NCBI RefSeq assembly: GCF_001194135.2
Contig: NC_069003.1
Span: 10,207,832-10,240,916 of the forward strand
DNA from: Octopus bimaculoides
Taxonomy: Eukaryota
Length of the DNA stretch: 33,085 bases
Direction: 5' to 3'
Translations under genes and position numbers: made by a program
Shown here: one piece after another, positions 22,892-29,196 of the stretch
Layout of the letters: the number at the start of each line of letters is the position of its first letter
Position numbering within the stretch: position 1 is the first letter of the stretch
The notes under the pieces: model-generated
Told to the model about the DNA's origin: nothing
What the model saw: only the letters and a program-made list of their open reading frames with translations
Database searches by the model: none

Positions 22892-23109
22892 CTCAGAGTC
22901 GCCCGTTCATACCTGTCTCCCCTCTCCACGCCACCAGTGTTATCCAAGGGAAAGGCAAAGACCGATACAGATTGGCACCTGTGACGTCGCAACTCATTTC
23001 TACAGTTGAGTGAACTGGAGAAACGTGAAATAAAGTGCCTTGCTCAAGAACACAACACGCAGTCCGGTCCGGGATTCGACGCTCTAACCACTGAGCCATT
23101 TGCCTTCAC
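22892..23109 (-). mobile_element. tRNA-derived SINE with conserved central domain; head internally deleted
   Basis: The minus strand reads gtgaaggcaaaTGGCTCAGTGGttagagcgTCGAATCCCggacc...gtgttcttgagcaaggcactttatttcacg...ccagttcactca.ctgtagaaatgag. The cttgagcaaggcactt segment resembles central domains of SINE superfamilies. Confidence 0.8.
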
Positions 23110-23146
<37 letters not shown>

Positions 23147-23647
23147 GATGTAAATTCTTAGCACCATTAGAGTGAAAATTAAGACATGACAAAAGTGGCC
23201 AATGTCTACACCGGTTAATATGTCGGCTTTATAAAATCAAAAGTCGTATAATCACCACCCTGAGCTTGTAACTAGTGGAGAAAATGTAATGATTGTTCGG
23301 TACTTTCCAGTACATTCAGACCGAAGCATCAAAACTAATAAACCAGATATTGTTGTGAAAGACCAAAACTATGAAAACTGTTTATTGATCGATATGAGTA
23401 TTCCTCCTGATCATAATATCTAAGCAAAAGAATTTGACAAGCTCAGAAAATATAAAGATTTCCTCGTTGAAATCGAAAAAAAAAAAAAATGTGGCACTTC
23501 AAGGGTTACAGCACCCGTGATTGTAGGAGCAGTAAGAATGATAAAAAAAGGAAGTGAAAATTATTTGAGAATAATCCCTGGCTACCATCCTTGAAAAAAG
23601 TGCAAAAGATTGCTTCAACTGGTGCGTCACATGCATTGAGAAGAGCA
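23147..23647 (+). mobile_element. R4/Dong-type (RLE) LINE fragment
   Basis: With stops and frameshifts it reads CKFLAPLE*KLRHDK...LHRLICRLY...TNKPDIVVKD...CLLIDMSIP.D.NI..KEFDKLRKYKD...MWH...PVIVGA...QKIASTGASHALRRA. These are the end of the CCHC knuckle, the RHD motif and the PD..D endonuclease. Preceded by (AAT)n. Confidence 0.9.
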
Positions 23648-23777
<130 letters not shown>

Positions 23778-24307: not shown

Positions 24308-24369
<62 letters not shown>

Positions 24370-24533
24370 TATTGTTGTTGTTGTTGTTGAGGGGATGTGA
24401 TGGGAATGAGGATACTGGTGCTGCTGTTTGATATTGCACCTATTCTTATCGCTATTGTTTGCAATTGTTGCTACCGTTGTTCTTCTTGTTACAGTAATTG
24501 TAGTGGCTGCTGCAATAATAACAATTATTATCA

Positions 24534-24988: not shown

Positions 24989-25019
24989 ATTATTATTATT
25001 TTTTTTTTTTAATATATTA

Positions 25020-25329
25020 TTAATATAGAAAGGATTGAGGTAACTCCTCCTGAAGATATAGAGTCAAAATTAAAAGAAGAGTGCCATTTGTTATCTTGTG
25101 AACAATATTTCGACATCTCGCGTGTCTTCAACTGGTTCAAAAAATAAATTTGTCAATCTACTTCATTTTGGTTAATATAGAAAGGATTGAGGTAACTCCT
25201 CCTGAAGATATAGTGTCAAAATTAAAAGAAGAGTGCCATTTGTTATCTTGTGAACAATTTTGACTCTATATCTTCAGGAGGAGTCACCTCAATCCTTTCT
25301 ATATTAACCAAAATGAAGTAGATTGACAA
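25020..25329. repeat. Direct plus inverted (fold-back) duplication block
   Basis: 25020-25106 equals 25172-25258 (87 bp, 1 mismatch). 25258-25329 is the reverse complement of 25150-25221 (72 bp, 2 mismatches). Confidence 0.95.
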
Positions 25330-25344
25330 NNNNNNNNNNATCTA

Positions 25345-25412: not shown

Positions 25413-25428
25413 TATTATTATTATTATT

Positions 25429-25791
25429 CAGTAGTTTTATTTCTTTTACGTGCTTTCACTTCACTACCGAGCGCAGCTCTGTGTGCCTTGGGTATGTGCT
25501 GTGGTTTGCTGTGATGCTCTTATGGTTACTGTATTGAAAGTGTTTTGCGTATGATGTGTGCAGTGCACAGTAGTGCAATTTTCTGTGTTATATATATTTG
25601 TAAGTCCTAGTGTTTTTGTTATGTATTTGTCTGAATATTTTTTTTATTATACCTAAGGCACCTACTATGATAGGAATTGTTTCTGTTTTTATATTCCACA
25701 TTCGAGTTACCTCTATTTCCAGGTCTTTGTATTTTGAAAGTTTTTCCATTTCTTTTAGGGAAACGTTGTCATCTGCTGGAATTGATACATC
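25429..25791 (-). mobile_element. R4/Dong-type LINE 3' end, cut by gap
   Basis: DVSIPADDNVSLKEMEKLSKYKDLEIEVTRMWNIKTETIPIIVGALG.../QKIALLCTAHIIRKTLSIQ* (stop 25526-25528), a ~95-bp 3' UTR, and a (TAA)n tail at 25413-25428. Confidence 0.92.
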
Positions 25792-28072
25792 NNNNNNNNN
25801 NNNNNNNNNNNNNNNNNNNNNNNNNNNNNNNNNNNNNNNNNNNNNNNNNNNNNNNNNNNNNNNNNNNNNNNNNNNNNNNNNNNNNNNNNNNNNNNNNNNN
25901 NNNNNNNNNNNNNNNNNNNNNNNNNNNNNNNNNNNNNNNNNNNNNNNNNNNNNNNNNNNNNNNNNNNNNNNNNNNNNNNNNNNNNNNNNNNNNNNNNNNN
26001 NNNNNNNNNNNNNNNNNNNNNNNNNNNNNNNNNNNNNNNNNNNNNNNNNNNNNNNNNNNNNNNNNNNNNNNNNNNNNNNNNNNNNNNNNNNNNNNNNNNN
26101 NNNNNNNNNNNNNNNNNNNNNNNNNNNNNNNNNNNNNNNNNNNNNNNNNNNNNNNNNNNNNNNNNNNNNNNNNNNNNNNNNNNNNNNNNNNNNNNNNNNN
26201 NNNNNNNNNNNNNNNNNNNNNNNNNNNNNNNNNNNNNNNNNNNNNNNNNNNNNNNNNNNNNNNNNNNNNNNNNNNNNNNNNNNNNNNNNNNNNNNNNNNN
26301 NNNNNNNNNATATATATAATACAAAGAATATATATACATGTATACACACATATATGTACATACTTACATCTACATGTGTATATATATGCATATCAGGGTA
26401 CAGGACGTTATATATATATATATACATATATAAGTGTGTGTGAGTGTGTGTATATATGTATGTGTGTATGTTTATATACATATATATACATATATAAACA
26501 AGTACACATACATATATATACACACACTCACACACTCGCACATGCACGCACGCACACATGCACACACACACACACACACACACACGTATATGATGTTTCG
26601 GGTGACACGCAGCAAATCTTTCCCACCGGGTTGAATTTCGCTTATGGAAGTGACTTCAAATCTCATATCAGAGGAGCGGTGGTGGAGAGAGGAGCGAAGA
26701 GGAAGGTGGGGTGGGGGAGAGGGCGACGTTCGGCGTCAGAATGTGGGGTGGCAGAATGACGGNNNNNNNNNNNNNNNNNNNNNNNNNNNNNNNNNNNNNN
26801 NNNNNNNNNNNNNNNNNNNNNNNNNNNNNNNNNNNNNNNNNNNNNNNNNNNNNNNNNNNNNNNNNNNNNNNNNNNNNNNNNNNNNNNNNNNNNNNNNNNN
26901 NNNNNNNNNNNNNNNNNNNNNNNNNNNNNNNNNNNNNNNNNNNNNNNNNNNNNNNNNNNNNNNNNNNNNNNNNNNNNNNNNNNNNNNNNNNNNNNNNNNN
27001 NNNNNNNNNNNNNNNNNNNNNNNNNNNNNNNNNNNNNNNNNNNNNNNNNNNNNNNNNNNNNNNNNNNNNNNNNNNNNNNNNNNNNNNNNNNNNNNNNNNN
27101 NNNNNNNNNNNNNNNNNNNNNNNNNNNNNNNNNNNNNNNNNNNNNNNNNNNNNNNNNNNNNNNNNNNNNNNNNNNNNNNNNNNNNNNNNNNNNNNNNNNN
27201 NNNNNNNNNNNNNNNNNNNNNNNNNNNNNNNNNNNNNNNNNNNNNNNNNNNNNNNNNNNNNNNNNNNNNNNNNNNNNNNNNNNNNNNNNNNNNNNNNNNN
27301 NNNNNNNNNNNNNNNNNNNNNNNNNNNNNNNNNNNNNNNNNNNNNNNNNNNNNNNNNNNNNNNNNNNNNNNNNNNNNNNNNNNNNNNNNNNNNNNNNNNN
27401 NNNNNNNNNNNNNNNNNNNNNNNNNNNNNNNNNNNNNNNNNNNNNNNNNNNNNNNNNNNNNNNNNNNNNNNNNNNNNNNNNNNNNNNNNNNNNNNNNNNN
27501 NNNNNNNNNNNNNNNNNNNNNNNNNNNNNNNNNNNNNNNNNNNNNNNNNNNNNNNNNNNNNNNNNNNNNNNNNNNNNNNNNNNNNNNNNNACACGGTCAC
27601 ACACACACCGACGTGTGTTTGTGTGCATGTATGTTTGTATATTTGTATGTATGTATGTATGTATGTATGTATGTATGTATGTATGTATGTATGTAGATGT
27701 CGTAGGTGGGTAGGTGAGTATATAACAACAATTAAAGCTGACATTTTAGCGCCATTTTAATTGCTGCTATTATTATTAACCCTATATATTGAGTAGCTTT
27801 CCCTTCGAAAACGCACATAGATACAAACATACACATATATAATATGAATTTCGAAACTTCGAGAGAAAGTGAAATAATTTTTCCTTTTTTTCTTTCAATT
27901 TTTAGTATGATGGTATTCTAAGCAGATAAAGCTATAGATGATGGGGCGTATATTGGCTTCTATCGAAAGCGTCTTTTTCACTCAATATTTACATTTACAA
28001 TATGTATGCATACATACATACATACATACATACATACATACATACATACATACATACATACATGCATACATA

Positions 28073-28660
28073 TTCACATCAGAAGCAGTTCTCCGAAAAT
28101 GTCATCAAGTATTAATTACCGATGAGACATGATGTGCCAAGGCTAACCCTAAGGACAACGAAATAAGAACCTACAGTATGGTAGAAGCTACAGCCACTCA
28201 TAATAAAAAGGAGCGCTGGTGGAATGTCCCAGTGAAAACCTCAATAAAACGTATACACAATAGACCTGACATAGTAATTTGGGATAGAGAAGAGAAATAT
28301 ACAGTTGGGGAAATCAGTTGTCCAGCAATGTTAACATAAAGCTAAAGATAAGCGAAATAGAAAATTCCTACGCTGAACTATTGAGGAATCTACAGCTATT
28401 CTATCCAGATTACAAGTTCAGGTTTATACCTGTAATTATTGGGCCACTAGGATATGTAACACACTGCCTAAATACCAATCTTGAGAAATTAGGCTTCTCA
28501 AAACCAGAAAGGAGAAAGCTGATTCTAAGACTACAAATCCAAGTGGAACTGTAAAAATTTATAAAACTTTCGAGAAGGTTATTATTTAAGTATATATGAG
28601 CATGTCTAGACATGCAACTATATGCATGATTCCACATGCATAAAACAAAACATACAAATC
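28073..28660 (+). mobile_element. Divergent RLE (R4/Dong-like) LINE fragment embedded in (TACA)n
   Basis: HIRSSSPKMSS/LPMRHDV...WWNVPVKTSIKRIHNRPDIVIWDREEK..EISCPA/VNIKLKISE.ENSYAELLRNL...FIPVIIGPLG.../GTVKIYKTFEKVII* (stop 28587-28589). (CATA)n lies at 28009-28072 and ~28665-28715. Confidence 0.9.
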
Positions 28661-28715
28661 TACACATATACATACATACATACATACATACATACATACA
28701 TACATACATACATAC

Positions 28716-28824
28716 CCTGTTGATGTTGAAATTCTAATGAAGGAGCCTTGGAGTCAGGTTAGGAACCGACTCTTTCTTTATTGGCAAGGAAATCTTGAAA
28801 TAAAAAAATAAAATTGAATAATGA
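28716..28824 (+). mobile_element. Short element embedded in (TACA)n, copy 2
   Basis: catac|cctgttg...gaaatt...tgaaggagccttgga...gaaataaaa..tgaataatga|cata has the same ends as copy 1 (3666-3767, minus). Confidence 0.8.
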
Positions 28825-29196
28825 CATAGATACATACATACATACATATATATATATANNNNNNNNNNNNNNNNNNNNNNNNNNNNNNNNNNNNNNNNNN
28901 NNNNNNNNNNNNNNNNNNNNNNNNNNNNNNNNNNNNNNNNNNNNNNNNNNNNNNNNNNNNNNNNNNNNNNNNNNNNNNNNNNNNNNNNNNNNNNNNNNNN
29001 NNNNNNNNNNNNNNNNNNNNNNNNNNNNNNNNNNNNNNNNNNNNNNNNNNNNNNNNNNNNNNNNNNNNNNNNNNNNNNNNNNNNNNNNNNNNNNNNNNNN
29101 NNNNNNNNNNNNNNNNNNNNNNNNNNNNNNNNNNNNNNNNNNNNNNNNNNNNNNNNNNNNNNNNNNNNNNNNNNNNNNNNNNNNNNNNNNNNNNNN

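Follow-up and report, generated by a model that had tools for sequence, protein, structure and literature searches.

Introduction

Several retrotransposons without long terminal repeats (non-LTR), also called long interspersed nuclear elements (LINEs), insert into microsatellites, among them Dong in (TAA)n, Kibi in (TC)n, Koshi in (TTC)n, Togen in (TG)n, Mino in (AC)n, some HERO families, and Waldo in ACAY repeats (PMC3812793; PMC4640811). In this study, we analyze a 33,085-nucleotide stretch of the Octopus bimaculoides genome (NCBI RefSeq assembly GCF_001194135.2, contig NC_069003.1, positions 10,207,832 to 10,240,916 of the forward strand; hereafter the window, in whose numbering positions are given unless a locus is named), and we present evidence that it very probably holds a dead, 5'-truncated non-LTR insertion of a Dong-like lineage which carries a restriction-like endonuclease (RLE) and is specific for (ACAT)n in a fixed orientation.

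Elements of the R4/Dong type lack an N-terminal zinc finger and consist of a short helical N-terminal domain (diverged Myb/SANT), a reverse transcriptase (RT), a CCHC motif and an RLE (PMC7998251). HERO is an RLE clade in which some families are microsatellite-specific, and Togen is related to NeSL (PMC4640811), while Kibi, Koshi and Dong have been listed under elements with an apurinic/apyrimidinic endonuclease (APE) (PMC3812793). Waldo (WaldoAg1/2 and WaldoFs1), which belongs to the R1 clade, inserts sequence-specifically into ACAY microsatellites (PMC3812793, citing Kojima & Fujiwara, 2003). Abundant active Dong-R4 families have been annotated among the repeats of Octopus vulgaris, their targets not being discussed (PMC13282606). 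Full-text searches of the literature brought up no published RLE element with (ACAT)n or (ACTT)n as its associated repeat; an entry in Repbase or Dfam is possible.

Results

The insertion lies on a 1,268-bp island (27591-28858) bounded by two N gaps, the downstream one at 28859-29196. Tandem Repeats Finder (TRF) located three arrays on it, all in one orientation with ACAT on the + strand. The first, (CATA)16 at 28009-28072 (96% matches, score 121), reads as (ACAT)n on the sense strand, constitutes the 5' flanking target repeat and runs straight into the first base homologous to the open reading frame (ORF), 28073. The second, (ACAT)16.5 at 28650-28715 (score 97), separates the ORF-proximal 3' untranslated region (UTR) from a 3'-terminal module, and the third, (ACAT)8 at 28824-28856, belongs to the 3' flanking target repeat, which reads ATAG(ATAC)n and then (AT)n over 28826-28858 (+ strand) until the N gap stops it. 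Since perfect ACAT/ATGT runs of at least three units, counted in both orientations, make up only 1.5% of the window's non-N sequence (432 of 29,060 bases), base-precise abutment on two sides and in one orientation is not expected by chance.

Three-frame translation from 28073 to the stop recovered about 172 C-terminal codons of an endonuclease-bearing LINE protein (28073-28589, + strand), which comparison with homologs and tblastn identify as the 5'-truncated, frameshifted end of an RLE LINE. It keeps the end of the CCHC knuckle, RHD, [N]RPD, the catalytic E, K, IPVIIGxLG and the SGTVKI tail. The motifs recovered on the + strand were RHD (28125-28133), ERWWNVPV (WWNVPV at 28217-28234), HNRPDIVIW (NRPD at 28259-28270), GEISCPA (GEIS/EISCPA at 28307-28327), NIKLK, YAELLRNLQ, IPVIIGPLG (28426-28452) and SGTVKIYKTFEKVII*, the last including GTVKI (28545-28559) and ending at a TAA stop (28587-28589). 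The copy must be dead because its reading frame changes four times (offsets 0, +1, 0, +2, +1). The best protein match of the remnant was P0012, a predicted O. vulgaris protein with 91% identity, followed by an O. bimaculoides protein. Homologs P0001-P0012 scored E = 7e-50 to 1e-25, and alignment A1 displays the residues that are invariant in the family. A full-length relative, locus L004, matches the window by tblastn with amino acids (aa) 984-1158 of its ORF.

A first-pass annotation, made from the letters of the window, had described a 5'-truncated RLE LINE between (CATA)n arrays of the same orientation, and TRF and translation confirm this description together with its peptides and coordinates, apart from the following corrections. 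The CCHC motif that it listed is absent as a knuckle, for the copy begins inside it and retains just the last Cys (LRKC, 28091-28102) with the His position substituted. The stop and 3' UTR had been noted as intact; the stop codon is indeed there, and the ORF leading to it is the broken one just described. Finally, a short sequence embedded in TACA repeats was annotated as a separate element; it is present at 28715-28825 but, as shown below, it is not foreign to the family.

Downstream of the stop, the ORF-proximal 3' UTR (28590-28660, + strand) is predicted by RNA folding to form two hairpins (28600-28615, GCATGTCTAGACATGC; 28621-28642) with a free energy of -16.2 kcal/mol (z = -3.5, 0 of 200 shuffles equally good), and its first 38 nt are 84% conserved in an O. 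vulgaris copy, L001. An Rfam scan of this region of the window detected neither a ribozyme like that of hepatitis delta virus nor any other Rfam family; matches to mir-297, mir-466 and similar families on the arrays were sub-threshold and of low complexity and were rejected.

To examine the association with the repeat, we took a census of junctions in the window and in two sets of loci, L001-L008 and L013-L015, which derive from O. vulgaris, from Argonauta hians and from no fewer than 8 ENA/JGI samples. The relatives that abut (ACAT)n share 40-90% protein identity. With the window's copies counted, all 12 visible 5' junctions and 12 of the 13 visible 3' junctions were found in (ACAT)n. When loci were oriented by their ORFs, 35 ACAT(+) runs stood against 3 short ATGT runs, all three of which lie in L006 away from the element. 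Sense (ACAT)n is abutted by five 5' truncation points, at about aa 975 in the window, about aa 1080 in L001, aa 853 in L002, aa 693 in the first L014 copy (L014a) and aa 446 in L003, and equally by seven full-length elements (L004, L006, L007, L008, L013, L014b and L015).

Among the truncated copies, the one in O. vulgaris (L001, chromosome OX597824.1) is cut about 100 codons further 3' than that of the window, follows (CCAT)n(ACAT)3 and has no (ACAT)n on its 3' side. L002 is preceded by about 200 bp of (CATA)n and followed by (ACAT)3 and then unique DNA, L003 has more than 400 bp of (ACAT)n on either side, and L014 contains a truncated and a full-length copy, each with (ACAT)n 5' and 3' of it (all three from ENA assemblies). 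The L004 element, on a 4.5-kb JGI metagenome contig, is complete (ORF 385-3867, 1,161 aa) and has (ACAT)n at both contig ends, as does the full-length L007 (ENA assembly). The full-length A. hians element (L006) lies between (ACAT)15 and ATAC(AC)n. Three other full-length elements come from ENA assemblies: L008 follows (ACAT)40 and its 3' side is off the contig, L013 has (ACAT)n on both sides, and L015 lies between (CATA)14 and (ACAT)5 followed by unique DNA. In L005 (JGI metagenome contig), the 5' end is beyond the contig and the 3' side is (ACAT)14. Beyond the 5' array, the DNA is unrelated unique sequence in the window (27700-28008), L008 (2500-2616) and L013 (1450-1505). The proposal that the lineage targets (TACA)n was thus borne out on the point that had been named as decisive, the 5' junctions of other copies, which were checked at 13 further loci and lie in the repeat; full-length ORFs such as that of L004 were also obtained.

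The full-length elements share a motif at the start of the 5' UTR, immediately after the 5' array (GACGTGTGGATTA / CAGACGTGTGAAAT / ACACGTGGTTAAG; L004 74-130, L007 48-90, L014 2722-2760, L006 3184-3200), which could be a promoter or a processing signal. L004 and L007 are alike both in their 5'-UTR starts (GACGTGTGGATTA) and in their 3'-UTR ends. The array of L003 has drifted into CCAT/GCAT variants, and the same drift is seen 5' of the O. vulgaris copy. Directly past this (ACAT)n/(CCAT)n/(GCAT)n array, L003 9990-10700 appears to contain the 5' part of an unrelated LINE, whose N-terminus is APE-like by eye only.

At the 3' end, L002-L007 and L012-L014 share a hairpin whose distance to the 3' junction is 37-50 nt. 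It opens with CCTT, has a 6-bp stem around a loop of 5 nt (frequently TTGTT or AGGTT), and closes with CGG after the return stem. In alignment A5, 88.6% of the cells pair, compared with 66% in column shuffles (0 of 500), a test in which the structure was derived from the same sequences that were tested for covariation, and controls slid along the sequence gave 22-48% pairing. Changes on both sides were seen at 6 of the 6 stem pairs, so that stem sequences vary between lineages by compensating changes. The 9-mer AATAATGAC near the 3' end of L002 was considered as a tail and rejected, the canonical hairpin being upstream at its usual distance from (ACAT)3 and chance copies of the 9-mer occurring elsewhere.

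In the octopus copies, this family hairpin is located not in the ORF-proximal UTR but in the module past the second array. The module (28715-28825, + strand; alignments A2 and A6) begins with CCCTGTTGATG, ends with AATAATGAC and contains the hairpin at 28746-28768 (+ strand; A5). Its ends are sharp, ACATA|CCCTGTTG ... AATAATGAC|ATAC, in alignment A2 with the L001 copy and with a solo 104-nt copy elsewhere in the window (3665-3768, - strand; blastn 83% over 87 nt). Read on the element strand, the solo copy is preceded by some 100 bp of (ACAT/ACGT)n (3768-3867) and followed by (ACAT)-like repeats (3646-3666), and no LINE ORF was found upstream of it. We conclude that the module is the family's own 3' end, because it carries the hairpin, is found again behind the O. 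vulgaris copy and can be aligned with the entire 3' UTR of the element in A. hians (A6). The idea that a second ORF end and stop lie in the module (TGA-AGGAG, against TAA-AGGAG in A. hians) is weakly supported by A6 and was not relied on.

Whether the ORF remnant, (ACAT)n and the module form one composite unit or result from two insertions is a closer question, and we moderately favor the composite unit. The module may instead be an independent, non-autonomous mini-element that arose from the LINE 3' end and was inserted separately downstream of a LINE ending at its ORF-proximal UTR, a possibility that we regard as somewhat under even. The solo copy, with its identical 5' boundary and ORF-less upstream sequence, is what such an element would leave, although 5' truncation guided by microhomology at an internal ACAT array would likewise give solo modules with one constant boundary. 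Moreover, the ORF-proximal UTR has significant hairpins of its own, and the roughly 45 nt that separate them from the array match the normal spacing between hairpin and end; against this, the clade-wide CCTT...CGG hairpin is missing there and is found only in the module. Two of the about 8 ACAT arrays of the window hold a module, so chance co-occurrence is not negligible, but the order ORF-UTR-(ACAT)n-module is repeated in the independent O. vulgaris copy L001, and these two LINE copies differ in truncation point and flanks. Whether composite or separate, the module is therefore further evidence for insertion into (ACAT)n.

Members of the clade have a single ORF of about 1,150 aa. The window copy lies downstream of the RT, being truncated, and the evidence for an RT comes from full-length relatives. 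In the L004 ORF, Pfam RVT_1 matches at aa 450-714 (E = 1.6e-25) together with a weak zf-RVT match, and the RT matches R2 proteins of known structure (phmmer, E = 1.6e-21). No Exo_endo_phos (APE) match was obtained on this ORF with Pfam at E <= 0.1. All 18 full-length ORFs have one C-x2-C-x9-H-x4-C knuckle, with RHD 29 residues on and [R/K]PD about 55 residues after that, and none of the 18 has a C2H2-like motif in its first 450 residues. The AlphaFold2 model of the C-terminal 298 residues, built on a 25-sequence alignment (mean predicted local distance difference test, pLDDT, 88), can be superposed on the region of R2Tg, turtle R2 and R2Bm that comprises linker, CCHC and RLE (E = 1.6e-10 to 2e-6, TM score TMq 0.57-0.65), the extremes of E being those of R2Tg 9dou_A (E = 1.6e-10, TMq 0.64) and R2Bm 8gh6_A (E = 2e-6); the next fold matches are PD-(D/E)XK cap-snatching and restriction nucleases. 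Judging from these sequences and models, the clade is of the RLE type (R2 supergroup), with a non-LTR RT, a CCHC motif and a PD-(D/E)XK RLE and without an N-terminal APE.

The first 80 or so residues are conserved throughout (RRNRDY..W..ELN.DL..Y....GY.KRLK.LWD..HPE....K.LRQQA) and are predicted to form three helices (pLDDT 82). A profile search with this domain of about 80 aa found 480 representative proteins, mostly short 5'-end ORFs, and Pfam and PDB sequence searches with it returned only noise. Its top Foldseek match was a Myb domain (1wgx), which is not significant (E = 4, TM 0.44-0.48).

A search with the full-length ORF delimited a compact clade of about 40 relatives at E<1e-92, after which there was a jump to APE-type LINEs at E ~1e-25. 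P0165, P0168 and P0174, which matched RVT_1 only, were tried as RLE outgroups and proved to be APE-type or chimeric. The most distant relative with flanks was P0162 (L010/L011), which is 30% identical to L004 over 770 residues colinear from RT to C-terminus (E = 2e-102) and whose 3' end joins (TAA)n. For the intermediate lineage P0158/P0159 and for P0161, sequence extends no further than the stop codon, where the contig of L009 ends. Within the clade, L012 (700-8646 of ENA ERZ25067561, ctg52933) comprises four copies in tandem and in the same orientation, one of them full length, separated by (ACTT)n, with one spacer that also contains (ACTG)n. It shares its ENA sample with the ACAT-type L003 and is 43% identical to L004. 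A neighbor-joining (NJ) tree built on 321 columns of the C-terminus places this ACTT lineage inside a group of ACAT-flanked members. Where its N-terminal domain departs from that of its ACAT neighbors is mainly the third helix, which reads LR[Q/E]QA..[I/V]EKK in the ACAT types and LRDHVSSIIKRK in the nested ACTT type.

The window also contains two Dong-like RLE fragments of the (TAA)n type. The first is a C-terminal remnant at 23290-23777 (+ strand; sequence and tblastn), running into (TAT)n(TAA)n at 23648-23777, which is 33% identical to aa 1038-1094 of the L004 ORF (tblastn) and 30% to the ACAT copy (BLASTP) and which the NJ tree sets apart from the ACAT clade. The second, at 25588-25791 (- strand; ORF list and tblastn, 33%), is a C-terminus reading DVSIPADDNV...IPIIVGALG that is cut by the gap at 25792-26309 and whose 3' UTR reaches (ATA)5 at 25413-25428. 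By sequence, these (TAA)n fragments evidently belong with the P0162 type and to another lineage than the ACAT copy. The first-pass annotation had stressed how far the ACAT copy diverges from the TAA-associated copies of the window, and the identity of only about 30% and the position of the (TAA)n types outside the ACAT clade in the tree agree with it. Compared with the natural pair that it suggested, the ACAT/ACTT pair is much closer (about 45-50% identity).

Other features of the window include a sequence resembling a tRNA-derived short interspersed element before (AAT)n at 23000-23146, where ARAGORN finds no tRNA, and the remnant of a mariner/Tc1-type DDE transposase ORF at 18087-18587 (- strand; Pfam DDE_3 E = 5.6e-5, Transposase_1 E = 2e-3). 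At 25000-25330, a unit of about 90 bp (ttaatatagaaaggattgaggtaactcctcctgaagatata...) is found twice direct and once inverted around a 10-N gap and could be a foldback like a miniature inverted-repeat transposable element or an assembly artefact. Long (GTA)n/(AGT)n arrays are located at 662-961, 17808-17899 and 24308-24389, two of them continuing into (GTT)n, and there are other long pure trinucleotide arrays.

Discussion

It seems most reasonable to take the 5' array as target DNA, and neither as part of the RNA nor as the tail of another copy, because five truncation points abut the repeat and the DNA beyond it is unique. This bears directly on the view that the element itself makes (ACAT)n, by template slippage as in the (TAA)n tail of the I factor, with 5' arrays either representing the tails of copies further upstream or having expanded later. 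In its favor, microsatellites are known to originate from the 3' tails of LINEs (PMC3812793), some 3' arrays reach great length (more than 400 bp in L003 and 268 bp in L014), and copies are arranged in tandem in L012 and L014. However, copies cut at five positions of the ORF should not all adjoin the repeat under this view, no upstream element is found in the unique DNA of the window, L008 and L013, and some 3' arrays are just 3-5 units followed by unique DNA (L002, L015), as would be expected if the element had entered close to the end of an array already in place; we consider this explanation improbable. That the adjacency reflects chance or passive accumulation in a genome rich in simple repeats, a view encouraged by the 187 tandem-repeat rows that TRF gives in 33 kb, by ACAT-type arrays at about 8 places in the window and by Drosophila Waldo-A/B, which are thought to gather passively near CA repeats (PMC3812793), is hardly credible given how little of the window ACAT runs occupy, the base-precise, two-sided junctions of single orientation at 13 further loci in several hosts, and the equal strictness with which sister lineages keep to motifs of their own, L012 to (ACTT)n and L010 to (TAA)n.

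Several points nevertheless weigh against (ACAT)n-specific insertion by a Dong-like element, or limit how far it can be carried. The evidence comes from filled sites only, no empty (pre-insertion) site having been seen, and target-site duplications are unreadable inside a microsatellite. The contigs of L004, L005 and L007 end in the repeat, so that adjacency is visible and array length is not, and the O. vulgaris copy L001 lacks (ACAT)n past its 3' end. The octopus subfamily is represented by three module copies and two ORF copies, and named-host loci are few (O. vulgaris and A. hians), most loci being from ENA/JGI assemblies. The NJ tree has weak support at its deep nodes, and the element is assigned to R4/Dong by its architecture and by an outgroup joined to (TAA)n rather than by reference sequences. 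Moreover, the modeled N-terminal domain is only a putative DNA-binding domain.

A mechanism can be suggested by analogy with R2, for which cryo-EM structures are available (8gh6, 9dou). The protein would bind the hairpin in its own 3' UTR, and the N-terminal helical domain, possibly with the RLE/CCHC region, would position it on the repeat duplex. The RLE would then nick the (ATGT)n strand, and the nick would prime reverse transcription, probably aided by read-through ACAT units at the RNA 3' end that pair with the target. Where cDNA synthesis stopped short, 5'-truncated copies like that of the window would be left. It is also conceivable, and we advance it as an unlikely but attractive extension, that target choice in the clade is set largely by a very small, swappable determinant, either the recognition helix of the 80-aa N-terminal domain or, more radically, base-pairing between the read-through-repeat RNA 3' end and the nicked strand. 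If pairing of the RNA end were to be the determinant, these RLE LINEs would be naturally re-addressable from one tetranucleotide array to another, and work on engineered target-primed insertion would find a ready series in the ACAT, ACTT and TAA lineages.

Known targets of microsatellite-specific RLE LINEs are (TAA)n, (TC)n, (TTC)n and (TG)n, and ACAY repeats are known as a target of the unrelated, APE-type Waldo only. If our interpretation is correct, cephalopods, other hosts and probably a cnidarian carry a widespread Dong-like clade that is associated with (ACAT)n. It would include a switch to (ACTT)n inside the ACAT clade, with L003 and L012 from one ENA sample at about 45-50% identity and closer than ACAT and TAA types, and it would single out two compact candidates for what sets specificity, namely the three-helix domain at the N-terminus and the conserved 3' hairpin together with the RNA end next to it. 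R2-type proteins are under development for site-specific DNA insertion, and natural relatives with simple, easily assayed targets would therefore be useful. The finding also bears on the frequent sharing of (ACAT)n arrays and their flanks between cephalopod loci, a nuisance for marker development and assembly.

With respect to known systems, the clade resembles R2 in its homologous RT (E about 1e-21), in the superposing linker-CCHC-RLE fold (TMq 0.57-0.65), in an RNA structure of the 3' UTR near the end and, by analogy with the R2 structures 8gh6, 8ibw, 9dou and 9nl2, presumably in target-primed reverse transcription. R2, however, has one or more N-terminal C2H2 zinc fingers and a Myb domain and targets ribosomal DNA, whereas the ACAT clade has no zinc finger and a tetranucleotide target. 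Waldo shares the same kind of target, ACAY microsatellites, but it is an APE-type arthropod LINE, unlike the ACAT clade with its C-terminal R2-like RLE and no APE domain; since the endonucleases differ, APE in one and RLE in the other, the shared target must be convergent. Kibi and Koshi are RLE-type elements. Kibi, Koshi, Togen and microsatellite-specific HERO are similar in that each is a LINE tied to one simple repeat, microsatellite target switching being recurrent, and differ in having other motifs and other hosts (fish, leech), although the motif of the leech HERO families (Repbase Reports 14:311) may overlap. The strict target association of the ACAT clade speaks against typical HERO membership, HERO insertion being mostly non-specific, although microsatellite-specific families do exist in HERO (PMC4640811).

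The closest likeness is to Dong and Dong-like elements (Bombyx mori Dong, DongAg and Biomphalaria DongBg), which have a single ORF with RT-CCHC-RLE and no N-terminal zinc finger, a short helical N-terminal domain, orientation-specific insertion into a microsatellite and presence in molluscs. Sequence-specific insertion into a repeated target, as in R4/Dong, is what the junction census found for the ACAT clade, and its affinity to R4/Dong is supported indirectly by an architecture like that in PMC7998251 and by the (TAA)n-joined outgroup. The differences are that the target is (ACAT)n and not the (TAA)n of Dong, that the (TAA)n type shares only about 30% identity with the ACAT type, and that the C-terminal signatures are EYWWNVP, SCPADVN and SGTVKI-KTF in the ACAT type versus ILWDF, DIAIP-D and TARILRKVL in the (TAA)n type. 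A further difference is the clade-specific CCTT-stem-loop-stem-CGG 3' hairpin. The ACAT clade is, in short, Dong's machinery and strategy applied to a different target, with a further switch of target within the clade.

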